Positions 45,020-63,258 of a stretch of DNA of 64,000 nucleotides are shown piece by piece. The translations under genes were made by a program, and so were the position numbers. The stretch's first letter is position 1. Every line of letters begins with the position of its first letter. Location: NCBI RefSeq assembly GCF_963853765.1, contig NC_088857.1, positions 3,658,001 to 3,722,000 of the forward strand, written 5' to 3'. The notes beneath the pieces were generated by a model. It did no database searches, was not told the origin of the DNA, and worked only from the letters and a program-made list of their open reading frames with translations. The stretch is from Magallana gigas (taxonomy: Eukaryota).

Positions 45020-48000
45020 ATGGCAGGTAAAATTACGAACGTTATTTGCTTATTGATTATTGTTTGAATTTATTTTAATATACTCTTTGATTTTTAATCA
45101 AGCTTAGTTTGTTCGGTGTCAAATAGACGCATTGCATAAAGTTATTGTGATTGTAACGCTCTTCAGTGTGTTATGCTGTTATAGATATTTTCTGTTTAAT
45201 CCAACATGGCAACAACTTGTTTCGTTTTAAAAGTCTTTTGAAATTTTTTATTTCCGTGTCATTTTATGTTTTTTCTATGTCTCTAGCTTACATAATGTCA
45301 ACAGAATTTTAATTCTTTATGTGTAGTCAGAATAACGAAAATATCATTTTGAATCACAGTGTTATAAAAAAAGAAAAGAACGATGTGCAGTATGTCTTGT
45401 TTTCTTTGCATACTATCTGCTTGTACAAAGTGTTTTGATAAGTATATGTTTATGCTATGACACACAGTTTACAGTCAAGAAATAAGCATACCAACTTTAA
45501 TTTGAAGATTTAATTGCGAAGAACAAAAAGTTATTTATTTCCTACAGTAAAGTGGAGTAAACCATTAGTGTTTTTCTTTAAGAAACTATCCAAAACTGTT
45601 GAACATTCTAAGCAAATGTCAAACTTACTAATATCTCGAGGATTCATTTATTTCTGATGACAGTAAGCTGGCATAAGCTGACAAACACCATACAACCTGG
45701 ACATTGAATAATTGTTTTGTAAATGATGAACTCTCTGAATCGAGATAAGTTCTCACTCTTCAAGTAAACAGTAATTGTTCTTGTGTCTTTTGAAATTTCT
45801 CAAATCAGAGAAGTTAATGTGTTGGGTTTGTTTCTTTTTCCCTAAAAGGCATTCCAGGCGACAGGATCTCTCTTAACTTGCATATGTTACAGAAATTATC
45901 CCGCTTGTATGAAATCTCTCTCAGCAAGCCCCCTGATGGATAGTTTGGGTTGGTGAGTTGTCATGGAAATTATTGGTCTGATGTTATATTCCATGTTTGT
46001 GAGAAATACTTCTCTCAAATCAAATCCTGCAGGTGCCCCTTTCAAGTTCATGTAGGCGGAGTCAAACAAGCCACTTGACCACATTGACAGTTGCAGGTAG
46101 ATGTGGGTCTGTCACAGACAAAAGTTGACATAATGTCACTTCTATATGTATACTGTCAATGATAAAGTACACCAATAGAATTAATGTTAAAATATATTGT
46201 CATTGATAACAACACTTACCAACAAATCAATTGTTACACACTGTGTCAAATATTAACAATGAGTAACAATCGCTGACACACTAGCAAAAGCACACAGACT
46301 CACACAAAATATGAAAAATCACCACTCACAAACTCACACTGAGAGCCACACTGACAGACTCGCTAATAAACTTGTTAACAGCTTCTCATCTACCTAATAC
46401 ATACTGTCACTGACAGACTCTAAATGACAATCATGCTGACAAACTTGTCACCGACTCATTGATTTTGAGAAGACTTTGACTCATTTGCACTAACAATGAC
46501 ACTGACAAACTGAAACACACCATCACTGACAGACTTACACTGTCACTCCAAGACACACTGTCTCTGACAGACACACACTGACAGACAGACTAACAGAATG
46601 TCACTCCAAGACACACTGTCACTGACAGATTCACATGCCCTCCAATGTTACTGTCACTTGGTCAGGTAGGCTTGCTGGTCCCCTGCTTGACCTTGGAGGG
46701 AGGGGATGGTTGATATAACCTTGGGCCATGACAATAAACAACAAAGAAACAGCCACTGTGTCTGTGACAGTTTCGACATTTATTCTATTGCTCTGCTGGG
46801 CATAGAAAACTGACAAGATTATACTCTGTCCCAGTTTGTTGAGTGGAGCTGTCTTGGTTCTCACAGTGCTACAAAGTGTTTCAATCATAGCTGTGCTCTC
46901 TTGATGAACTGGTGACAGAGGGAAATCTATCTACTTTTCTAGGTCCTCAGAAAGAGCTGGACAGAATGTCAGAATTGTGTTCATTGGTTTGATCTTTGTT
47001 GCTTATCAAAAAATTGATTACCTTTCTCATGATTTTAAGTGCCTTAAAATAAAACCTATGAAAAGGACTATATATGATAAGGGCCTAAAATGGCCCCCTA
47101 AAATGAACATCATCATTTTACTGTAAATCTTTGTTTTCTTTGTACAGATATATATGTGATGTTTATACATTATGTTCATTTTGATTCAAGTGCACACAAT
47201 TTAGAAATATGGTATCATGAAGACAGTCTTTTCCCGCCATTTTTGCATTTTTAGCATAAAACAGCTTGTTTTCAAGCAGTTTTTCTTTCAAAAAACATAG
47301 AGCGCACGCTTGAACAAACAACATATTTTAATCAGAGATGTAACTAGCCAAGACTAATAACTGACAAAAAAAATTTCCTTGTTCAAGCATGCGCTCTATA
47401 TTTCCCCTTTGTTTATAGGTAAGAAAAATGTCAATTTTTGACTGATTTTGATTGAATTATAGAAATAGTGTCACTTCTGACGTCATATACTGCAAGTGAG
47501 TGCAAATAAATCAAATAAATAGGTGAAAAATATATTTTATATCAACTCCTCTAAAAAATAACATAACATTTTAATATTCCCGAAACACTTTAAAAATGGC
47601 GAATTATGGGGGCAAAATTCAACTCATATCATATATAGTTCTTTCATCAACTTTTAAAAGTTTGCATTATTTGGTATACTTTATAAACAATTAAGTCTCT
47701 CACTGAGGTTTGAAGGTATTAACACATTTGTTTCAACAGTCCTGTCATTATTTTTCTGACTGTATACAGGCCTTACAACAGAACTTGATGGAGCCGGGGG
47801 GTCCCAGTCCTACCCAGGAGAGGAGGAGGATGAAATCCAACCGCCCACCTCGGGCCTGGCACCTCAAGCTGAGGTGTCTCTCCCACGGACCCTCACAAAC
47901 AAACACCCGGTCATGTACCTCAACGAGTTAAAACGTAACCTGACATACCAGCTGGTGTCTGAACAGGAAGTGGACAAAGAGAAACTCTACACCATGTCTG

Positions 48001-51000
48001 TGGTGATTGACGGGAGGGAGTTTAATGGAACAGCCAAGAGTAAGAAGCTGGCCAAGATGGAGGCGGCCAGGGTGGCTCTAGAGTCGCTGTATAATGCTGT
48101 GTATGTGCCAGGTAGGGTTGTTTATTCTACGTTATAAACTACAGATTTTAATTTCTCAGGATTTCGAAGACTAGAGTCATGAATTTCAGAATATTATTAA
48201 GGAGAAATTGTTTGTTTTCTTAATCAAGCTACATGTATTTAAATTATAAACTCTCTGCAAATTGTAAAATTAAAAGCAGTCACACTGAAATGTGGTCAGT
48301 ATAATTTCCAGTTTATTCTTTCATCAATGTCACATGGTGTTAGTCAAGCTTTTTTTGGTACGTAAACATTTAACCAGAAGATATGTTGGTGGTGGATTAA
48401 CAAACACAGATCCACCATTAACAACCAATCATTGATAAATATTGCATTAAAAAATTGTTTTCTTTTCTGTTGATTTACCCACATTTCTAACAGTTCTAAT
48501 AATTTCTTAAAAACCTTTGACTGCTGAAAAATTGATTTTATACCAATGTGTATTTATATTAATGTAGACCAAGAAAAAGAATTTCAATTAATACATGAAA
48601 ATAGATTCACAGTTATCACTTACCATGTTTTTCCTTTGTAGATCTGGAAAATCAAGTTAACCAAACTCAGGAGACAGCGGAAGTTCCTTGGGTCAAAGGT
48701 CAGTCAATGATTGACAGTCCAAATTTAAACTTAGCGGCACAAGCCAGTGTGTAGCTACATGTATTAGATAAGTGAAGTGTTTGACTAAAAGTGGTGCAAT
48801 GTCACTTGATTTCCTGATCAGCATTACCTGTATTTGCAAGAGTCATTTATTGTAAGAACGACTCCTATATTGATACACACTTAATGCATTTCTTCTACTT
48901 CTACATTTAATATAAGGTTTCTTCTTGATTTTTTTCTAGGAGTTAAGATTCGTTTCAGCTCGCCTCTTTCAAAAATTGAATGTTTAATGGTTTTATCTTG
49001 ATAACTTATGATTGAAGAAGAAACAGCTACATTCTACATTACATGTATCATAAAAACCAACAAAAATATCTGTATATTTAACCATTACTTGCTAAATCCA
49101 TTTTTTTTCTCAAATATATTGTAACAGTTATTTACCACTGCAGTTATATTAATTCTGATTATTCCCACTCCAGGGAGTTGTATGAGGTCTTATTACATGC
49201 TGCTGTGTAAGTTGATGGGGGTGTGGGTAACTTACTTTAAGTTACTTACAATCTATAGAAATACAGAATAAAAGTTACAGGCTTACAGTACACAGTGTGA
49301 ATATTGAGCTCTGTGCTAGTTTTCTTATTTCTCCTTCCTTTTCATTCTAGCGGCATTTCCAAAAATAGGCTAATTTGTGAAGGGATGCTCTACTTGTTTA
49401 TTTATATTACATTTGTGTATCAACCACTAATTGAAAGAATATGATGAAAAGGAATGTATTGAACAAGATACCTTAATTTGGAATAATGAATGAAAGTTAC
49501 ATGCACATGTGTAGTTCATGTGAATATTCCTTTAATAAGAAAACTTATTCATTACTACAAGTATCTTCACGATATTACCGTGATAAAAGTGTAACATTAC
49601 AAAGAAATTCCCTTACATGTATACCCTCCCCCTATCTTTTGAATTTCATAAAAAGCAATGGTTAGATTTGATCTTTTTTCTGGGAGTTATACCCCTTTTA
49701 TTAATGCATATATTGTCATTATGTGTAATGTGGGAGCATGGGGTATCATTTCTTTCATTGAACTAATTTGAAAGTTCAAAACTCAGATTTTACCATTTAT
49801 TATGATTACAGATACTACCAATAACAAAGTACATGTTCCTGGTTCATATATTTAGTTCCAGGTCATCTTGATGTCAGTCACTTATTTTTTTATGTTATGG
49901 CAAAGATTCGGGTAAAAACCAAATAAATGAGTCTTTCATTCATTTTAGNNNNNNNNNNNNNNNNNNNNNNNNNNNNNNNNNNNNNNNNNNNNNNNNNNNN
50001 NNNNNNNNNNNNNNNNNNNNNNNNNNNNNNNNNNNNNNNNNNNNNNNNNNNNNNNNNNNNNNNNNNNNNNNNNNNNNAGGGGTGTAAATTTTATAGCACT
50101 GGAACATGGGATCCTTCATGACCTCACCGCAGCTATTTATTTCTCGTAGCTGATGTGAGATATGGGGAGAACTTTTCCTGATTTAGTGGTGGACTGGCCC
50201 AGGGGTTCTCTAGTTTGCCTAATGATGACTGTGTTGATTCTGTTGACAGGTATTGTATATATAACGGAGTTACGGATTTCCCAAGGATGGGGTTATTCTC
50301 TAATGAGAGAGAAGAAGCATTGATTTCTGTTCCCGGGCTCTGATTTAGAGGGTTGCATGTAGTCTCTGAGTTGGTATTCAGCCTGGATCTGCCCTTTCCA
50401 AGGAAATTTAAGACACAAAAATAGAATAAACTTATAAACTTCACCACTTTATTCCAAGGTCCTTAATCTTTCAACATTTAGATGATATACCAAACTTAAT
50501 TGACAGTAGCATAATAATTGACTGGATAACATCATATAAATCATCAAGGTGCTATTAATGGTTGCTCACCTACCAGCACTTGGTTGTTCAGTGAGTTGTC
50601 TGGGAGGTGAGTGGTGTCTCCCACGGGCCTCCTGTCATCAGCTGGCTCAATCATATATTCTCATTTGATTAATTGTATCTCTGCATATTAGATTACCAGA
50701 TTTTCTGGTGGAGATATCTGTAAAATTAACTTACTTCAGGCCCTGTCTTTAGGGGATTTCTTCCCCCCAGACTCTGAGTGATTGGTTGACTTGTCTGTCA
50801 GAGGTGACCCCTGCTTGCATGAGGCCGGCCGCAGCTACTGTAGACATCTTCATGTGAATTTCCCTCACCTAATGTCTGCCTAATGAATGTAGAATCTAGA
50901 CAGAGCCCTACATCATTTATATTCATTTATAAATCACGTAGCTTGATGCCAGGCCACTGTTCATCACTGCCCACAGATTTACTTCACCCATCTTTTGTTT

Positions 51001-51123
51001 TCACACTGTGACATGAAAATGCAATTTAAAAGGAAATAAAAAATGAAAAGAAAAGAAAAAATGTCATAGACAATCAGTCAGGTGTATCTCTGTCCAAAAT
51101 GTCTAAAATATAGTTCAATTTTC

Positions 51124-51183
<60 letters not shown>

Positions 51184-54100
51184 TGTCAGAGCTATTCTAG
51201 AGATTTCAAACGTTAAAAGAAAACATGTGACTGATAAATAAATTTTATAGATATCCTCTTTAGCAATGAATAGAGCAACTCAGCCATGCCAAGCATTTAA
51301 AAGATGCACAAGATGTATTCATGTACTTTAAATCATGCAATACTCTAGAGACAACAATGGATAGACTTAAGTATTTACTTAGCTGAGGGAAAAGAAATGT
51401 TAGATACTTACTGATTTTGAGATCAAGTTAGTATAGGTCAAGGTCATAAACAAATTTAATTCCAAGTAATTCCAAGTGGTTCTTCTTGATATAATACCTT
51501 GCATCAGACAAATTTATTATTGGCAGTGCCTCATGAGTTGAACAAATAATTTTTATTATCAGAAACTCATATATATTTTGACACATGGGGATTATTATGT
51601 GTCAGAATGCATGATATGTCATATCAGCATGAGGGACCCAATATCAGTCATTGTTGTTCCACCCAGGAAGAAAAACCATTTTTATCAATAAAGAGAGCAC
51701 CAAAGGAGACAAAATCTATTATTATACTTTCATGTTAAATACTGAAATCTGATTGGTTTGGACGCAGTTGGTAATCGGTTCTATTACCCTCAGCGTTAGC
51801 AACACACTTGGCAACGGGTAACACAACGAATTGTTACATGCACGTAAATTATGCGCGTACAGTTTGCCGTAGAATTCAGGTCATTTCTATATGAAAGCAG
51901 TAAAATTTTCTTTAAAATTAAGACATTCAGTATAATAAAATAATTAGTGCCTGTTTGGGAGGGTAACTGTTGAAATTGACACCCCTCGAAAACCATTGTC
52001 AACCTCCGCTTCGCGTCTTGACAATGGCTTTCTCGGGGTGTCAATTTCAACAGTTACACTCCCAAACAGGCACTATTTATATAATGGTACATGTATATTT
52101 GTAACTTAAAAGGTCAAAGACAATGTTCAAGGTCAAGGTGAATCAGTGTCTGAAACGTGTTCTTGAAGATCTATCATGAAGAATAGATAAATTGAAATCA
52201 TGATTGCATAAAGAGAAAAAAATAAAGCAAGCATCAATTGATGATTTCAATCTTTGATATGATGCAGGCAACAGTGAAGTGCATTTCATGTTTGTACACT
52301 CTGTGAAGTGACTTGTAAGGAAGTCCTCAAATTGCTATAAAAATTATAATTATTAAAGATTGAAAATATCCCTTAGTAAGCAAGGGTCTTAATATATTGA
52401 TAACCCAACATGGCTGGCCTAATCTGGACCTAATCCTGACAGCTGTGTTAACAGCCCCACTGTCTACAAGTATTCCCTCAATCTCTCACAAAATATCTTC
52501 ATTGGTCTCAAATATAGCTGTTCTGTTCTCTTCTGTTTTAAAGTTTGGGTTTTGTCATTTTCTGACGTTCTGTTCCCTATACAATAGGGTAGAGCTCGGC
52601 TGAGTAGAGACCTGAATGCCTGGTACGTGTATTAGTTATAGAGAACTAGTAGTACTAAGCTTCTTACGGTGGTGGATTAAAAACCAGCGGTCCACCCAGC
52701 AAGGCCCGATTCACAGACATTTTAAATATCACCTTTATTGTAGCCTGCTATGGATGAGAGCATACACAGCTTAGCTGATCAGTATCAGGTCTGGCGATAG
52801 ATTCCTTTGTTTTGATCAGAACTACCTCTGTCTTTTGTAACGGGAGGCTTTTCTGTTCTGTGTGATTAAAGGTAGGCTTGGTTTTTTTTCTGTGTTTTTG
52901 TTGGCTAATTACATCTAAAATTTTGACATAAAATAGAAAAAGATGAAGTCCTCAATATTTTGTTTCCGATTGTTTCTTATTACTTTCAATATATTCCTAA
53001 ATGTTTGTTGTTTATAATTATGAAGGAATATTGGTTTGTATGTGTTAATTTTAGTTTAAGCTATAACCATTTTTAAATTTCCTGTACTTTTTGTTCTGAG
53101 TATAAATAAGGATATTCTCATTCTTTCATTTCATTAGATATGTAGAACTACTTAATATCACTCAATAACCGGTTATGTTGAGTGAAATGTTTGATAGACT
53201 TTACGAACATACTCCGTTGGTCTCTAGATGATCCAAATTTAATGAGATATAGGCTGTTGATGATAATCTACAAAAGTTATGATGCAAGGATGAAAGAAGC
53301 AGTTTTGATCCTTATCAATGCATGAAAAGTTTTAAAGAAGAAAACCTGCAGGTCTTCAGAAACTGATAAAACATCAATATCATAACCCCATCCAAGTCAA
53401 GTTCCAAATTTATGTTTATCATGTAATTTTAAGGTTTTAACAAGCCCGAAGTTTTCTGTTTTTTAATCCCTGGCATATAATTGATTTTCTTTCACAGCAT
53501 GGTGACTTTTCAATAGGAACTGACTTTTTGGAGATATAAAATCTATATTCTGGATGTTGTCATTCTGGTATTTCATTAGATACCTGGGCAGGTATTTGAA
53601 ATCGTTTTGAAGGCATCGATGGGGAAACATTCAAGTAACCCTGATTGTCACTTTGGGTGCATCTTGTTTACTGCATTCTATTGATCCAGATTTTTGTGGG
53701 CTTTTCTCACGGTATCTTCTCCCCAACTTTATTACTAGACCTTAATTGATGCTGAAGATATAATGTATCTAATTAGGGTTTTAGTAATCAAATCTTCAGT
53801 GAATCAGCTGCATTAAGCGGTTGTATAAATCTTAGCAGGCGAACTCAGAGGTGGAAGTTTACCTCAGAGCAAAAGTATGCTTAGATTTCACAGCTGGGTA
53901 GAGTTCAAATAGAATTGGCTTTCATCAAACAAAAGTATGCTCAAATTGGATTACAGGGGGAGATGACAGTGGTTGAAGAAGTTTGAACCGAGTGTTTCCT
54001 GATTCCTGATTTTATAAATTATTCCTATTTACCACCCATTGATTGATGTTTGCGAGGTTTTTTTTTCTTGCCAACCTTTTTCTCTTTATGACTTCCACTC

Positions 54101-57100
54101 ATCGCACAGTTCTTCTTCTTTATTTTCATTTCCCCTGCTGGGACTTGAATTTCCTGAATCAGGCAAATAGCGATACCAGCATACCCCAACTCTATACCTT
54201 ATCTATTGGTAACTGTCTGTTTTATTACAAAAATATTCTAGCACTGATAAATCGAGTTCCAATAGCTTCCTATCCAAAAAATATTGCCACGTTGTGTCAA
54301 TCGTAAATGATATTCCTGATTGCTTATCACTTCAGGAAAGTGTGCATGAAATGTTTGGTTAAACCTTAGAAAAAAGTTATAAGCTTTTGGAAGTTGATGA
54401 GCAGCTAATATAAACACATTATAGATCAGATCATGGATTCTTAGACAAATACTTGGTATGTAGAGGTTTTACAAGAAATCAATGTCTACATGTTCTCCAG
54501 AAATTACATAGTTATCATGGCTTGGAATGTATAATTTTGTCAAGACAGAGTTGATAAATAAAAACATGGACTTGCGTAGTTGACTGTAGAATTATTAGCT
54601 GCTACGGTGACGCACTTTTATTCTGACAGCCACAAGTACGCATTGTTTGATTGTTTTGTTTCCAGGTTGGTTATCCCATAAAACCATTTTATGAAAACCC
54701 TTTATCTGGTAATCAATAGAAATGTGTATTTCATCAATTAATGTGATTACCATGCATGTAGTAATGCTGTAATACAGTTCCTGGGTAAAGGCCTGGAGAG
54801 ACCCACTAATCACTTCAGATTGGATCAGAAATATAATACATTGCCATCCCAAATCGAGATTGTCTCGAGATGTTTGTCATAATTAAGCCTAGCTTTCACC
54901 TAACAATAAATTACTGGAGTAATGCACTCAGACTAGCAGGTTTCAACTCCAAGAAAATTACTCTCTGGAAACAGATCCGGTTTGGCACCTTATAATTTCC
55001 TCAGCCCCGGAAGACCAGTCTTGAGCTTCATAAATCATCACCAAGACCTTAATTAAGTTTAATTATTAATGCCGTGCAAGGTCTGGGAGAGTGTACACAT
55101 ATAACTCTCCTGTTTCCTGTGCGAGCCAGCAGAATGCAGAATTATCTCCAATTGTCATGATCGGAAACGTTTTCTTTTAGATTAAGGACGGTCTTTAGAC
55201 TCTCAAGCATGAGAATTTTCAAAAAAGAAGAAAAAAATTACATGGTCACCGGTACATAAGTAGGATTGATAAAACTAAATACTTTTCTAAGTTTTATTAG
55301 TTTATTGAGGCTTATATTGGAAAATACATTGAATTGATTTGTATTTGATTTAGTAATTAACCAATTATAAAATTTATATTTTTATTAATTAATGTTTTTT
55401 AATAAGAAGATAATTATATATATATATATACCGGTAGAGAGTCCCGTTTAAAGTCTATTGGTATATGGTATTTTTTAGAAAGTTAACAAAGTCTGGTGGA
55501 AAATCTATATTTTGATGAAAATTGAAACAGTATACAAAGGCCTGTGTACAGAACTTGAAGAATCGAAGCCTGTGAGGAAATCTTTGATGCTTTGATGTGA
55601 CGTTATAGGAGCTCAGCTGGAGGCTTATGGGAGACACCGACCGGTGTTTATAGAAGACCAGCCCTCTATCTCCTCCCAGTAACACAACCATTTAACGCTT
55701 TAAAAAGTGCATTTTTCTTTCGGAAGCTGACACAATTGACCTGCAATTCTCTGTAATCGGACAAGGCTTGAGTCAATATTGACTCTACCAATATGTGTTA
55801 TCAAGCCCGGCCTTGCGTTAAAACTTTTTCTTTTCTACCCTTTATCTGTCCATATTTGTTCAGTTCAATGTAAAATAGTAGACAGCTTTGGCATTTTGCT
55901 GTTTTTCTGGCGGTAACCAAAGGCAGTGCCAGATGTGCTTACTCTACATTGGCACCACAATCGTCGGTTCGCTCTATGCACCCTTATACACACTGGTTTT
56001 TACTTCATTACCATTTCAAGGAGTCTCTTGTATTGAGTCGTGTGAATTTCAATTCAATGGTCTTTTTCACTGCAGTCAGTCTTTAGTCTTATTTTGGGTT
56101 TTCAGCTAGTGTGCATATGGTTAGGAAATTGACAGGGAATATATTGAGTTAATTTGGGTAAGTTCATATTGAAATCATTCAGTATTTGATTACAGTTAAT
56201 TTGTCTCTTAACATATTCGTAGCAGTGTTGTCTTGTTATTACAAGGTCACCGAGGTTATCCCTCTCAATTATGCATGACATTTATCATACCTTACACTGT
56301 ACAAACATCTTTAATTCCACATGTTTAAAACTTCACAATTTTCTATTATGATACAATGCAATTTCATTAAAAAAAAAAAATTCTTAATTTTTACACCAAC
56401 CTTATTATTATTGAAATGATGGAACCTGTGTTTATTCTACTTCACCAGTTTATATACCGTACTATTTTTACTAAGCGTATGTAATGTATGTTGCTAGTTG
56501 TGCTGTCACACATACAGTAACTGTAGTTATTACATGTACCTACTATGTAAATATCACATGCAATACACACTAATTGTCTCATGCATTGGGTAAAACACAA
56601 TTCTAAATGACCATATCATCGAATCAATTGTTCCATTTCTTTTCTGTTTGGAAACCATTACCAAATGAATATTTTGCTTGAAAATTCATTTCTGTAAAAA
56701 AAGAAAAGTTATGAAATACAATAATCAGCAATATATGGTTGGTCCAGCAAATGGATAATGAAATGACATAAAATGTTGAAGCATGGATATTGTGACCAAT
56801 AATGCACCATTAATGAAGAAATAAAATATCTACAGCAGTTGTATGTTATGGAAAACATCATCGCCTACAGAACAAGAATTATCAGGGCACTGACTTCGGG
56901 ACATATCCCTGCATGATGGAGGTGACGAATAGATTGACAACCAGCTATCTCAACACTTAGAACAAGGCCTGGGTAAAAGGCCTATATATCAGGCAAGATG
57001 CCTGCTGAATCTAACATCACTTAGCGGACACCATATTATAGCTGACCACTTATCTTGTCATCTCAGAGTCACATAAGTCTGCCCATGTACACCTAATGGT

Positions 57101-60100
57101 GCTGGGTCCATTAATTCTAACCCAATACAGATCTCAGAGCATTTTGTTAGCACTCTCTGGTCAATCGGTCCAAATGTTATCATTACTATCAATGCATTTC
57201 TTTGCCGTTGGAGAATCTGAATGTTTATTGAAGGATGGTGAACCCTTCATAAGGATTATCTTGTTAATTAAGAAATTTATTGATGTACATTGAATGAAAT
57301 TTCTGCTTCTGCATGCACAATGTAAAAAGCTGCGCGATATTACACACTTTAATAATTAGGTTGCGGCAAGTCGAGATTCAATTTGTTGATTATTGAGTCC
57401 ACCACTTACGGGTTGATCAATCTTTATTCCTTGTATAGTACAATTATATTGTGTCAGTGTGCTCAATTGATAAGAATTAACCATTAAAATGAAGCCTAAT
57501 ATTGGTGTAACAATTCCCCCGATCGGCCACTTTCTACTGCTGTCCCATTTATAAAGAGTCTGGTGTCCGGAATTTATGTCAGATTTTATATTGCTTCATT
57601 TCCGCTGATATGGAGGGTGGCTAAACATTTTCCCCAGTGGTCAAAATTATTAAGTTACAGATGGGGGCAATTTGTACCGTGATCAGACCAATGAAATTAT
57701 CCGACAGAAAAGGTTTGTTTATTAGATAGATCGGGAAATGACTTTGTGCTGGAATTGATGGATTTCTACTGCGGATGTCCTTCAATCCAACTGACCATAG
57801 AAAAGCTGTTTGTTAGGATAAACCTGGGCAATTCCTCTGATATCAAATTAATTCAAAACATCCCCATAAAGCTGCCCATCTGCCAATAGCAATTATGTTT
57901 AATTCTGTATACTGTATAGTATAACATCTTCTTCTCAAACCTATCGTAATTAGTCAAAAATGTACACAACACCTGAGATAGATTGTACCTTCAGAATTCT
58001 AGTGAATTAGAAGATATTGATAACTTTCCTAGAACATTGAGGCAACAGCTGCTGAAACTGAAGGACATGTTTGTTCACTGGCTATACCCCCCTCCCCCAC
58101 CCCACCCCCACCCCACCCCCCTCAGTTATTGATAAAACAGTTACAGCAACATCCCCCATTCCAAGTCTCTCTGCACCGGGATCTAACACTTTCAGGAAGC
58201 CCTTCTCCTCCAATCTTTGCTGTAGAAACTTATACCGGCCTTAGGAAAGCCCCCACTTTCTCTCTGCAAGGACCTGATGGCTGTGGATCTTCTTCAATTG
58301 ACAAAATTTCTTCATTTCCTGTGCATCTGACTGGTGTATCAATTATTCAGCAGTGAAGACATCAGTCGGGTGATCAGGCCTGGGGGATGGTTAAGCATGG
58401 ATTATCTAGGGCCTACTTCTATTATTGGGGATCAGGGGTATTCCCGGGGATTTCCAGGAAGAGCTTGGTTTTATTAAAAAGGTCAGTGAGAATTATTAAT
58501 TGTATCTGATTGGGAATCTCTGGGAGAACTCTGTGTATATATTCTGTGAGATACAAGGAATGGTAGACTGAGGTGATCCTAGCAGAATGTGAAGTATTTT
58601 AGACAGCATAGTTTAATGTTGTTTTCTATTACAATAAATGATGAGGGCCTCACAGCACTGACTTTGTACACAATGTTCAGGAAATTTAATTATAAGAGAC
58701 ATGACTGTAGTCAGTTCAACAGCCTCATCCTGATTGCCAATTTTCACAGACATGCTTGTAATTGTAACTATTTCTTATCGTTCTGTGAATGCCTGGTCAG
58801 ACAGCTTTTTCACATGCTAACTTTCATATTTATATAGATTTGTGCTCATTGATATGCTATCAGACTTTATAAGATTTTAAGTATGCTCTTATTGTGTGTA
58901 AGCTACAGTTAAGTTCATGTTTTTATGCCTGGTAAAAAAATGAGGGGTGGGGGTGGGATGACTTGTTTAGATTGTAAGTAACTGTTTCACTGGAAGTGTG
59001 CAGTTCTATTGGTTTGCCTGTCTCTTTAAAGTTTTACTTTACGTTTTTACATTTTTCCTAACGATCTTCATTGAAAAGCCAATACCGGTACCTTTTTTTT
59101 CATTACTGTTACTTTTTATCAAAACATGAGTGAATGTCAATGCAGCATAAATTCTTCCTAGAAACAATAAAGATGTTGGGCGTTACTTTTTTATTTGAAA
59201 ATTTAAAGAATATAAAATCTGTATAGTTAGCCACCATGACGCCCCACTGTGGTGGTGAGGCATTTATAATGCTGCAGTTTGCATTGAGTGGCTCCGATTC
59301 CTACGGATGGGGTGCTATGGATGATCCATGCGATAATCTGTAGAGTAACCGTGTAATGATTATAATGAGTTGTCCTGTACATAGGGTAGGATTCCGTGGA
59401 GGGAAAAAATGATGGATTGTTCCCATCCTGAGCTTCTTAATAAAGTGTTAGATAAACTTGTACAGCTGTCTGTTAACACTTCACAGGGCTACAGAGGCAG
59501 AGGATCTGATTTATAACGTAAACCGAGTGTCTCGGGTCGAGAGGGGCGGTGTTGTGTGAAATCTCACTCTATAGAAGAGGGTGTCTCCTCCGGAACCTGA
59601 AGAGATGGGCCCCTTGTCAGAATGACACTGGAATTATCTCAAAGAATTGGCAGAGCTAAAAATATCAAGGATTTCATCATTTCGCATGTCGTGTCTGTAA
59701 TTAAAGAATGTACTTTGCTTTGCATCTAGAACAGTCGCCTTAAGGATCTACATTAGAGTGATGATGCTTCATAATTATTTTGTTTTTTTGTAAAAAATGA
59801 TTATATATAAGCATCTATCAAACACCAAGAGATGTTATTCTGTGGTTGAAAGGAGCCAATTTACTGGTACCAACCAGAATCAGCAAAACTTAATCTTTTG
59901 TTCGTTTTTCTGGTACCCAATTATCCAAAGAAGTCACGTCTTTTTCACGTTTTGAGAATTGATTTCTTCTTTCTTTTGTCGTGATGTGGAAGTGAGAAAT
60001 GAGTATGAGCATAAAGATGCTGGAAAGGCGTAAAGATAATTCCGCTATGTATGTATGAAATACAGACAGCTTTAAGAAGAAGTTTGGCAGTTCTAACTGG

Positions 60101-63100
60101 GGAGAAATTAATATTTCATTCCCAGAAGTGTGTGGTTAATAATATTATCATCAAATTTCTTCATTCAATTCTGGGGTTGATATTAGGTTCAAAATGAAAA
60201 CTGACACCATGAAAGTGATACGCTAGTGTTGTATTCATTTGGTCAGGAGACACGGGGAATCAACTTCATTTCTTATAAAAGTATTCTTCAGAAGAACAGA
60301 ATATTTGAAGGAAATATGACAGAATGAAACATCTAGTTGTTGATTAGATGCCTGTGAGGATTAATTACATTGATGATTATAAAGATGTTTCCTATGTTCA
60401 GTAACTAACCATAGCTCCCAGAAGACTTTCAAGTTATATGACAATTTCTGTCTTTTGCTCCACAAGCTTAGCTGAATTTATGTCTATTCAATTTATGATT
60501 TAACTATATTTTGAAAATCACCGCTAATTTAACATGTTTAAGAAAGCAAGCTTTAATGCAGATATGCAGGGGGTATATGAGCCTTAAGCTGCTTCTGAAT
60601 CAATGGAGGATTTTTACTTGCTCTCACACACTGCTTCAGATCTTATAGAATTCTGCTAAGATTTCACTGCTTCAAATCTTATAGAATTCTGCTAAGTTGC
60701 TCACAAGCAGAGTTAAAAATGTACATAAATAAGACCTCTAACTATCTTGATAGTTTTTGTTTATAAATCATTTATCTTGGGGCGATGACCACCAGAAGTG
60801 CTAATGTAATGAATTGACAGCAGGTGCTTGTCAGGGGAAATAACTCTGTAATCTTGTCATTTCAGATGAGTCTGGTATAAAAACTGAAGAGGAAGAAGGG
60901 GAAGAAGAAAAGTCAGGCATCATGCTGGGAAAACGCAAGTTTCCGGAAAATGGGACGCAGATTATTCTAAACAAGAAAAGAAAAATACAGACTGCACCAG
61001 TCGCAAAAAATGCCCTGATGCAGCTCAATGAGATCAAACCTGGGCTTGAGTTTCAGTTTGTGGCTCAGTCTGGGCCAGTTCACGCCCCAACTTTCATCAT
61101 GAGTGTAGAGGTCAATGGGACAAAGTTTGAAGGTCAAGGACCCACCAAAAAAGCTGCTCGCCTGAGTGCAGCAGAGAAGGCCCTGAAGTCCTTTGTGCAA
61201 TTTCCAAATGCCTCTGAGGCCCATAAAGCCTTGGGGAGGCAAGTGGTTAATGACGGGGACTTCACATCGGACAATGCAGAGGCTTCAAATGACGTTCTGT
61301 TTAATAACTTTGAAACTAATTCAGAAAACGGCACCTCATGTGAGATTTTACCCAAAGACAAAAATGGCATGAACAATTTGCCGAAGGCTAGAAAATCTGT
61401 GGTGCCGTCTGTACCAGATGGTAAGAATCCTGTCATGATTCTGAACGAACTGAGGCCCAGTCTGAAGTATGACTTTGTGAAAGAACACGGTGAAAGCCAC
61501 GCCAAACATTTTGTGATGTCAGTGGTTGTGGATGGGATCAAGTTTGAAGGATCTGGTCGAAACAAGAAGCTGGCTAAATCCCGGGCCGCTCAGATGGCTC
61601 TCACCAAACTGTTCAACCTGGACTTCTCCACACATCCAGGTAATTACACTCAAAACATTTCTCCCTGTAGGAATGTAAATCAGTTCCCCACTGAAAAAAT
61701 ATTTTTGCAATTTGTAGATGTGGTTGAATTAAATATCATATCTGATAGGAAGATAAGCAACGTTTGTACAATCATTACAATTTTCCAAGAAAACAGATTC
61801 CATTAGATAATTTTAATCATTTAGAAATGTTAAGATGCCTGCTATGTATTTTTCAGGCACCAAACCAGTACCCAAAGAATCTCACACCAATGTACCCCAG
61901 GAGCTGGCAGACTTAGTCTCACGGCTCGTCCTGGAAAAATTCTGTGAACTGACGGACAATCTGACCTCTCCGTACGCCCGGAGGAAGGTGCTATCAGGGA
62001 TCGTCATGACAACCAGTGACAACGCAGAGAATGCCACTGTGATTTCCGTCTCCACGGGAACCAAGTGTATTAATGGAGAGTACATGAGTGACCAGGGTCT
62101 AGCGGTCAACGACTGTCACGCCGAGGTCATAGGTCGAAGGTCACTGATGAGATACCTGTACTTTCAGCTAGGAAAGCACTTATCTGGGAATCGACTAGAA
62201 AAGGAGTCTTCAATATTCCAGGAAAAGGAAGGAGGTGGCTTTATGCTGAAACCCAACATTCACTTTCACCTGTACATCAGTACATCTCCGTGCGGTGACT
62301 CGAGAATTTTTTCCCCTCATGAAGCAGCTCAGGAGGTGGAGGGTGGAGATAAACATCCGAATCGTAAGGCGCGAGGACAGCTGAGGACCAAGATAGAGTC
62401 TGGGGAGGGCACAATCCCTGTAACCTCCTCGGGGGGCATACAGACATGGGACGGGATTCTGGAGGGGGAGAGGCTGCTGACCATGTCCTGTAGTGATAAG
62501 ATTGCCCGCTGGAATGTCCTGGGGATCCAAGGTAAAGTGCATGTTGTATGTCATTAAACTTTAGGTGTTGGAGCTATATAAATACCTGGAAAAACTATCT
62601 GTTCTATGGTGTATGTATGTTATCAAAATTAAACAAAAAAGATTAAAAACCACAATATGTATTGTAAGAAAAGATCTTTAATATGCATATAACTTTGTGT
62701 GATGATTTTTAATTCTCTGTATTCTTATTCATTGTAGGTAGTCTCCTGAGTCACTTCATCGAGCCCGTCTACTTTGACAGCCTCATTCTTGGTAGTTTGT
62801 ATCATGGAGACCATCTATCTAGGGCTGTTTATTCACGCATATCAAACATAGAAAACATCCCATCCCCCTTCCGTCACAATCAGCCATTCATGAGCGGAAT
62901 CAGCAACCCGGAGAGTCGTCAGCCACGAAAAGCTCCGAACTTCGCTGTCAACTGGTGCGTGGGTGACGCGGGTCTGGAGGTAATTAACACGATGACTGGT
63001 AAGACGGAGCAGGGGGCGTCCTCACAGGTGTGTAAACAGGCCTTCTTCAAACGATTCCTACAGCTCTGTGGCAAAATCCCCACCCTCACTGGTCAGTCGG

Positions 63101-63258
63101 TGACTCCCCTACCCAAGGTGTACGCTGATGCTAAAGTCACAGTGATGGAGTATCAAACGGCAAAACAACAGATGTATCAAGCGTTCCAAAACGCTGGTCT
63201 AGGACGCTGGCTTAAGAAGCCTATTGAACAAGATCATTTCTTTGTATCACCGAGCTGA
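45020..63258 (+). CDS. ADARB1: Double-stranded RNA-specific adenosine deaminase, ADAR2 type, with three dsRBDs, 791 aa
   Basis: Exons 45020-45026, 47770-48111 (extra dsRBD), 48642-48698, 60866-61639 (dsRBDs [14 protein letters not shown] and [12 protein letters not shown]), 61857-62531, 62738-63258; all introns phase 1, 2376 nt. Deaminase motifs [32 protein letters not shown]. The last three exons are very secure; the first three are inferred from phase and splice sites across a gap. Confidence 0.9.
46250..46630. repeat. Low-complexity CA-rich region with ACACTGACAGAC-like repeats
   Basis: Recurrent CACTGACAGAC and TGTCACTCCAAGACACACTGTC (twice) in ADAR intron 1. Confidence 0.7.
47071..47636. 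mobile_element. ~565-bp MITE with imperfect TIRs
   Basis: TATATGATAAGGGCCTAAAATGGCCCC ... GGGGCAAAATTCAACTCATATCATATA. Confidence 0.65.
49949..50077. other. Assembly gap (129 N)
   Basis: Run of N within ADAR intron 3. Confidence 0.99.
51127..51179. repeat. (GA)n microsatellite
   Basis: About 25 uninterrupted GA units. Confidence 0.97.
51720..52085 (+). mobile_element. Hairpin-ended element (Crypton-like, inferred)
   Basis: 5' CTGATTGG motif; terminal palindrome ~51940-52080 with loop CCTCCGCTTCGCGTC. Confidence 0.7.
52380..58860 (-). pseudogene. Decayed coding tract of unidentified origin inside ADAR intron 3
   Basis: Minus-strand frames with few stops: 54852 to ~54030 (~275 codons, 5 stops) and ~58860 to 58140 (~240 codons, ~9 stops). 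[14 protein letters not shown] at ~52475-52435 resembles an aspartic-protease active site. Confidence 0.45.

Follow-up and report, generated by a model that had tools for sequence, protein, structure and literature searches.

The locus described here raises the question of whether an oyster ADAR2 carries a third domain for the binding of double-stranded RNA (dsRBD), encoded by an exon that lies about 12.8 kb upstream of the part of the gene that encodes two dsRBDs and the deaminase. The window, that is, the whole stretch of DNA analysed, comprises 64,000 nucleotides (nt) from Magallana gigas (NCBI RefSeq assembly GCF_963853765.1, contig NC_088857.1, positions 3,658,001 to 3,722,000 of the forward strand), and coordinates below are positions within it. 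The gene has the features of an ADAR2 (ADARB1-type) editase, with two canonical dsRBDs and an A_deamin domain containing the H, E, C and C catalytic residues. For Rosani et al. (2019), 'two RNA binding domains' served to define the ADAR2 of lophotrochozoans, ADAR catalogues give two dsRBDs to both oyster and octopus ADAR2 (PMC9989829 Table S2; PMC6651903), and the additional dsRBD known from squid ADAR2a has been regarded as apparently cephalopod-specific and as possibly underlying exceptional mRNA recoding (PMC10278661). We consider it likely that the gene in the window is an ADAR2 of which 47770–48111 is a genuine internal exon adding a third dsRBD, and this domain is probably an old molluscan feature and not a squid speciality.

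Assembled transcripts provide the most direct view of how the exon is used. We aligned 15 contigs from Logan assemblies of 15 public runs (L007–L019, L023, L024), retrieved through open reading frames (ORFs) of 741 and 759 amino acids (aa); 13 of them, from 13 runs, encode the protein P0305, and the other two come from a relative that is approximately 94% identical. All 15 map to 47770–48111, 48642–48698, 60866–61639, 61857–62531 and from 62738 onwards. P0305 is itself a 741-aa product of assembled public RNA contigs, found in a search with a gastropod long isoform and representing a cluster of 439 members (P0397 is likewise 741 aa), and it matches residues 51–791 of the spliced model at 99.2% identity without gaps and across both junctions. 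The preliminary description of the locus, made from the DNA alone, had predicted the 57-nt exon at 48642–48698, the acceptor at 60866 and in-frame junctions 48111/48642 and 48698/60866, and all of these are seen in the contigs. The first junction is also crossed by six raw reads with six different starts in a stranded polyA run (X24), in which the 342-nt exon has a depth of 4–11x with first mates on the minus strand only; the second is taken from the contigs, not from raw reads. The 57-nt linker exon is conserved in the long isoforms of C. virginica and Saccostrea.

The preliminary description also held that either the 342-nt or the 57-nt exon can be skipped, a possibility that follows from their lengths and phases, and no exon-skipped form was found among the 15 contigs, whose retrieval favoured long ORFs. 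Short isoforms are annotated in relatives (C. virginica X4 and Saccostrea X3) and begin at MLGKRKF or, in the case of Saccostrea X3, in sequence lying just upstream of the large exon; judged from these sequences, they look more like products of an internal promoter than of exon skipping. The matches to a search with the 113-aa exon translation were for the most part unspliced genomic ORFs reading into the intron (P0001, P0004 and P0007), which are uninformative on splicing.

The reading of the 342-nt exon as frame-preserving and as encoding a full dsRBD with a KKxAK motif is borne out. The exon is open throughout in the +2 frame with no stops, it joins the 57-nt exon and the 60866 acceptor in frame in the spliced model, and the domain, at roughly 47892–48110, matches Pfam dsrm (PF00035) with an E value of 7.3e-10 and 39.7 bits against a curated cutoff of 23. 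From 18 aligned mollusc copies, AlphaFold2 predicts an alpha-beta-beta-beta-alpha fold (helix 10–17, strands 23–31, 34–43 and 46–52, helix 55–71) with a predicted local distance difference test score of 95.5, and Foldseek matches it to solved dsRBDs at template modelling (TM) scores of 0.7–0.9. The best PDB matches are dsRBD2 of ILF3/NF90 and the RNA-bound dsRBD2 of human ADAR2, at 44–47% identity, and the nearest paralogue in the oyster genome is dsRBD2 of ADAR2 (46% identity, compared with 36% for dsRBD1).

Helix 1 (PVMYLNEL) and the KKLAK motif are intact, and K55, K56 and A58 are invariant or nearly so across the 18 mollusc copies; of the three classical RNA-contact regions, two are preserved. 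The third, the loop between the first and second beta strands, SEQEVDKEK, lacks the canonical GPxH histidine retained by the cephalopod copies (SESGPPHDR). This histidine is typical of strongly RNA-binding (type A) dsRBDs, although the fold does not need it, and its absence possibly weakens one of the three contact regions. By analogy with squid ADAR2a, it is plausible that the third dsRBD would serve as an additional anchor on double-stranded RNA and raise the affinity of the enzyme for duplex RNA, a role that is tempered by the missing histidine. To our knowledge, protein-level or activity data on a three-dsRBD ADAR2 come from cephalopods only, and like the altered loop this counts against assigning such a role in the oyster.

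The domain is not confined to one oyster. Among isoforms annotated in RefSeq or GenBank, three-dsRBD long forms are found in oysters (C. virginica X1–X3, Saccostrea cucullata and S. echinata), mussels (Mytilus coruscus, M. edulis and M. californianus), a scallop (Ylistrum), gastropods of five lineages (Haliotis, Gigantopelta, Patella, Littorina, Babylonia and Pomacea) and cephalopods (Octopus vulgaris, O. sinensis, Argonauta and squid ADAR2a, ACO52474). In Argopecten and Mizuhopecten, ADAR2 X2 (P0300, P0301) has four dsRBDs, two of the N-terminal type (N domains) in tandem. The annotated isoforms of a chiton (Liolophura), a nemertean, a brachiopod, two hemichordates and amphioxus have two dsRBDs only. 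A search restricted to residues 1–85 of P0305 gave just three oyster clusters, owing to its word filter, and is uninformative on how far the domain extends beyond them. As a separate observation on these annotations, the C. virginica isoforms P0412, P0413 and P0414 of the newer annotation contain an 18-residue insertion, RWNVLGVQGRTVYDDKIG, that duplicates RWNVLGVQG in the deaminase domain; it is present neither in the older C. virginica models nor in the window, and may be an annotation or assembly artefact at an exon junction.

We propose that the N domain would have arisen by duplication of a dsRBD2-type domain before the bivalves, gastropods and cephalopods separated, and that it would be the counterpart of the extra squid dsRBD. 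The alternative that survives best is convergence, in which the cephalopods on the one hand and the bivalves and gastropods on the other each duplicated dsRBD2 independently. Two domain trees bear on this. In the first, built from 100 dsRBDs with insects included and a single squid copy, dsRBD1-type and dsRBD2-type groups are split at 98/100 and the 20 N domains from bivalves and gastropods cluster as a single clade within the dsRBD2 group, but the squid N domain falls in a basal polytomy outside that clade. In the second, in which octopus and argonaut copies were added to give three cephalopod copies and the insects were removed, the split between the two types stands at 100/100, and the 23 N domains of molluscs come together as a single clade within the dsRBD2 type (83/57), present in 82% of bootstrap trees. 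The support for this clade is only moderate, the tree is built on 72 columns, and an approximately unbiased (AU) test on the larger set of domains rejects neither a single group of all mollusc N domains (p 0.39) nor a grouping of the squid N domain with cephalopod dsRBD2 (p 0.33), all of which tells against treating a single origin as settled.

Convergence is further favoured by the GPPH loop that the cephalopod N domains keep and the others lack, by the two-dsRBD isoforms of the chiton, and by the beetles, in which ADAR2-type genes have gained dsRBDs independently. Set against this, the position of the domain, its layout on an exon of its own and the frame-preserving length match between squid and oyster, the starts of the following exon agree to within about two residues, and the MYLNEL and FN-x-VY motifs are shared among mollusc N domains. 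No strictly diagnostic columns separating N from C domains were found. On these sequence comparisons, descent of the cephalopod and other molluscan N domains from a single duplication seems fairly likely and independent duplication rather unlikely. The suggestion in the preliminary description that the three-dsRBD form is older than the cephalopods agrees with these findings: its occurrence in three mollusc classes, the common clade and the shared layout with squid speak for it, while the AU test leaves a separate cephalopod origin unrejected.

Evidence that the exon is coding comes from comparison with the homologous exon on a genomic contig of C. virginica, in which the acceptor and donor are the same and the flanking introns cannot be aligned. 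Over the 77 codons from LPRTL to VYVP, dN is 0.155 and dS is 1.87 (dN/dS about 0.08), and purifying selection on the reading frame of the domain is strong. The first in-frame ATG of the long ORF encodes M51 (47913), which lies within PVMYLNEL where helix 1 begins, and from M51 the frame is open for 741 codons. The 11 codons preceding M51 encode a protein sequence identical to that of C. virginica, with silent nucleotide differences present, and the low dN/dS, including residues just upstream of M51, argues that the domain has been translated through oyster evolution. We did not use the polymorphism within the domain (15 synonymous, 0 non-synonymous changes) as evidence because the contigs were chosen for encoding the same protein, and only the part upstream of M51 is free of this bias. 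The far N-terminal 35 codons are poorly conserved and their polymorphism is mostly non-synonymous (five non-synonymous and one synonymous in codons 3–36 of the 342-nt exon), a pattern to be expected in either a disordered tail or leader sequence.

The second of these possibilities leads to another alternative, in which the dsRBD exon acts as a 5' leader and the protein made is the canonical 637-aa, two-dsRBD enzyme starting at M155 (MLGKRKF, ATG at 60922), as given in published catalogues. The structure of the 5' end lends this some weight. The preliminary description had joined exon 1 directly to the dsRBD exon (45026/47770), and here the transcripts differ from it: this junction is not seen, and every contig that reaches exon 1 (seven in total) runs from 45026 through a 104-nt exon absent from that model (exon 1b, 45849–45952) to 47770. 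Six contigs (L010, L012, L013, L014, L016 and L023) read ...GGGAATGGCAG/GCATTCCAGG... across the join of 45026 to 45849. Exon 1b is present in all 15 contigs, and its join to the dsRBD exon (45952 to 47770) is also found in one X3 contig and one X24 raw read. The longest contigs start at 44999 and 45002, and a GAAAGTGAAACT motif at 44992–45026 lies at or just inside the transcription start of exon 1.

Inclusion of exon 1b places the exon-1 ATG, which is in good context (G at -3 and G at +4), out of frame with the long ORF in the window species, and this ATG instead opens an upstream ORF (uORF) of 33 codons that stops inside exon 1b. Six ATGs precede M51, the exon-1 ATG included, and three more of them lie in exon 1b; two of the upstream ATGs share a 47-codon uORF that overlaps the M51 ATG. 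Given these upstream ATGs and the inclusion of exon 1b, it is not assured that the long ORF is translated efficiently, and these features, together with the relaxed appearance of codons 3–36, weigh against a translated third domain. However, a leader would not account for a dN/dS of 0.08 across the domain and into the codons upstream of M51, nor for the 741 open codons; RefSeq models of C. virginica and Saccostrea treat the same exon as coding with in-frame upstream ATGs, and an exact look-up of the 637-aa product of the commonest haplotype found no match in Logan. On this evidence we regard a purely leader function as improbable, and translation of the three-dsRBD enzyme as very likely.

Where translation of the three-dsRBD form would begin may depend on exon 1b. 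With this exon included, the start would be at M51 to give 741 aa; were it skipped, the exon-1 ATG would give 791 aa starting MAG, as in C. virginica X1. This 791-aa form could not be recovered here because the contigs were retrieved through the 741- and 759-aa ORFs. In C. virginica, RefSeq X1 starts MAG/PSVEL... and X2 has its start, MDSWG/, in the exon that corresponds to exon 1b, both in frame, whereas in the window species the ATG of exon 1b itself (ATGGATAGTTTGGGTTG/) is out of frame owing to a few extra bases in the exon 1b of the gigas group. The 'M' start of P0409 was set aside, as it is a GTG called by a prokaryote-style gene caller and no real ATG. That exon 1b gates the choice of start codon is speculative, and the joint proposal of one conchiferan duplication of dsRBD2, dating back more than 500 million years and retained by bivalves, gastropods and cephalopods, with the 104-nt cassette exon of the gigas group, whose inclusion would shift initiation to M51 or beyond, acting as a splice-controlled switch between three- and two-dsRBD enzymes, is put forward only tentatively.

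The notion that the dsRBD exon forms part of some other gene upstream, or was brought here by a scaffold misjoin at the 129-N gap between it and the ADAR2 body, could draw on that gap and on Pecten maximus, in which RefSeq places two N-type domains in a separate 255-aa 'interleukin enhancer-binding factor 3-A-like' gene (P0009), but it can be dismissed, since 15 independent contigs run from 48698 to 60866 across the intronic gap in the right order and orientation, and the Pecten gene is likely to be a split gene model because other scallops carry the N-type domains fused to ADAR2.

The exons of the gene as supported by transcripts, together with the assembly gap, are collected in Table 1; the 3' untranslated region runs on to at least 63947.

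Table 1. Features of the ADAR2 locus in the window. A slash marks the exon boundary, with intron bases in lower case.
Feature	Position	Strand	Details
Exon 1, 5' end according to reach of contigs	44999–45026	+	ATG 45020–45022, donor ATGGCAG/gt
Exon 1b, 104 nt	45849–45952	+	Acceptor aaaag/GCATT, donor GGGTTG/gtgagt
Extra N-terminal dsRBD exon, 342 nt, phase 1-1	47770–48111	+	Acceptor acag/G, donor CAG/gtaggg
57-nt linker micro-exon (19 residues), phase 1-1	48642–48698	+	tag/AT...AAAG/gtcag
Assembly gap, 129 N	49949–50077		Only N run; within 12.2-kb intron
Large exon, canonical dsRBD1 and dsRBD2	60866–61639	+	Pfam dsrm x2, E 3.8e-29
Deaminase exon 1	61857–62531	+	Pfam A_deamin E 2.7e-65; CHAE and SPCGD motifs
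Deaminase exon 2 to stop codon (63256–63258)	62738–63258	+	Pfam A_deamin E 1.4e-31

Several other elements lie near these exons. The intron ahead of the dsRBD exon contains a dispersed repeat of approximately 585 bp (47062–47645) that ends about 125 bp upstream of the exon; a first look at the genome gave at least 1,990 candidate copies, and 40 scored copies are 91–98% identical. An internal stretch of this repeat also matches the opposite strand, and in all four runs RNA covers both strands of the repeat at very high depth; its probable identity is a young non-autonomous transposon. At 44328–44491, read depth is again high on both strands in four of four runs, with reads that continue into unrelated sequence (loose ends at 44393 and 44426), which probably reflects either a further repeat or part of an abundant RNA. 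Further to the left, a minus-strand ORF at 39863–40438 contains a unit of about 60 residues (ICKRTTSYLENCRRSYPYNEGTL...) roughly three times in tandem, which implies that a DNA unit of about 180 bp is repeated there.

If the domain is expressed in the oyster and occurs in three mollusc classes, the trait is far older than the cephalopods and is uncoupled from massive recoding; were it an old conchiferan invention, the third dsRBD could not by itself explain recoding on the cephalopod scale. The domain counts used in studies of ADAR evolution would then be corrected, and oyster, mussel and abalone would offer non-cephalopod systems in which to study the role of the third dsRBD. In practice little changes, since the long isoforms are already among the automatic RefSeq models of relatives, and the finding corrects and extends earlier accounts without introducing a new kind of molecule. 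A link between the third dsRBD and salinity in this osmoconforming animal is speculative.

Comparison with known systems places the oyster gene more precisely. The C. gigas ADAR2 in Table S2 of Zhang et al. (2023; PMC9989829) has 637 aa, two dsRBDs, no Z-DNA-binding domain and the H/E/C/C residues; the printed part of it is identical by eye to the window ORF from 60922, and the model from that Met is also 637 aa. The published start therefore lies 154 codons downstream of the start of the 791-aa model, and canonical two-dsRBD ADAR2 (human ADARB1 and the 637-aa C. gigas protein) corresponds to residues 155–791 of the long form, relative to which the oyster transcripts carry at least 104 extra N-terminal codons that include the third dsRBD. 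The closest structural match to this dsRBD, dsRBD2 of ILF3/NF90 (PDB 3P1X and 5DV7; 46% identity, TM 0.79–0.92), belongs to a different protein family, and the likeness explains the 'ILF3-like' name that RefSeq gives to the detached N domains of Pecten.

Beetle Adar (Ceutorhynchus, Henosepilachna, Dendroctonus, Agrilus and Diabrotica) is likewise of ADAR2 type and has three to five dsRBDs with the extras N-terminal. However, the beetle extras nest in the dsRBD1-type group (98/100), whereas the mollusc N domains lie in the dsRBD2 group, so that the beetle duplications are independent of the molluscan gain. Beetle isoforms with three to five dsRBDs (P0016, P0034, P0185, P0186, P0010 and P0070) come from several families.

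The closest counterpart is squid ADAR2a. According to Palavicini et al. (2009, 2012), as cited in PMC10278661, the extra squid dsRBD raises activity and salt tolerance, effects measured in squid alone. Squid also has a documented pair of splice variants, a and b, whereas no skipped transcript was seen among the oyster contigs with their bias towards long ORFs; the squid N domain keeps the GPPH loop that the oyster domain lacks, and oysters have, beyond the exons of squid, the 57-nt linker exon and the 104-nt 5' exon affecting the start codon. The squid variants differ by exactly 99 residues (ISL/GNSS...TSEP/EGDHG compared with ISL/EGDHG), a difference that keeps the reading frame and would suit either phase 1-1 or phase 0-0. 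In squid the optional double-stranded RNA-binding motif (dsRBM) is exon 2, dsRBM2 and dsRBM3 together are exon 3, and the deaminase is exons 4 and 5 (Voss et al., PMC10278661). The oyster gene is arranged in the same way, with an extra N-terminal dsRBD on its own frame-preserving exon, dsRBD1 and dsRBD2 on one exon and the deaminase on two, and by protein comparison the squid exon that follows the optional exon starts within about two residues of the oyster 60866 acceptor. The two N domains share MYLNEL in helix 1 and (R/K)SKKLAK and group together in the second domain tree, and the oyster long form aligns collinearly with squid ADAR2a (Doryteuthis opalescens ACO52474, 786 aa), the two proteins being 59% identical.

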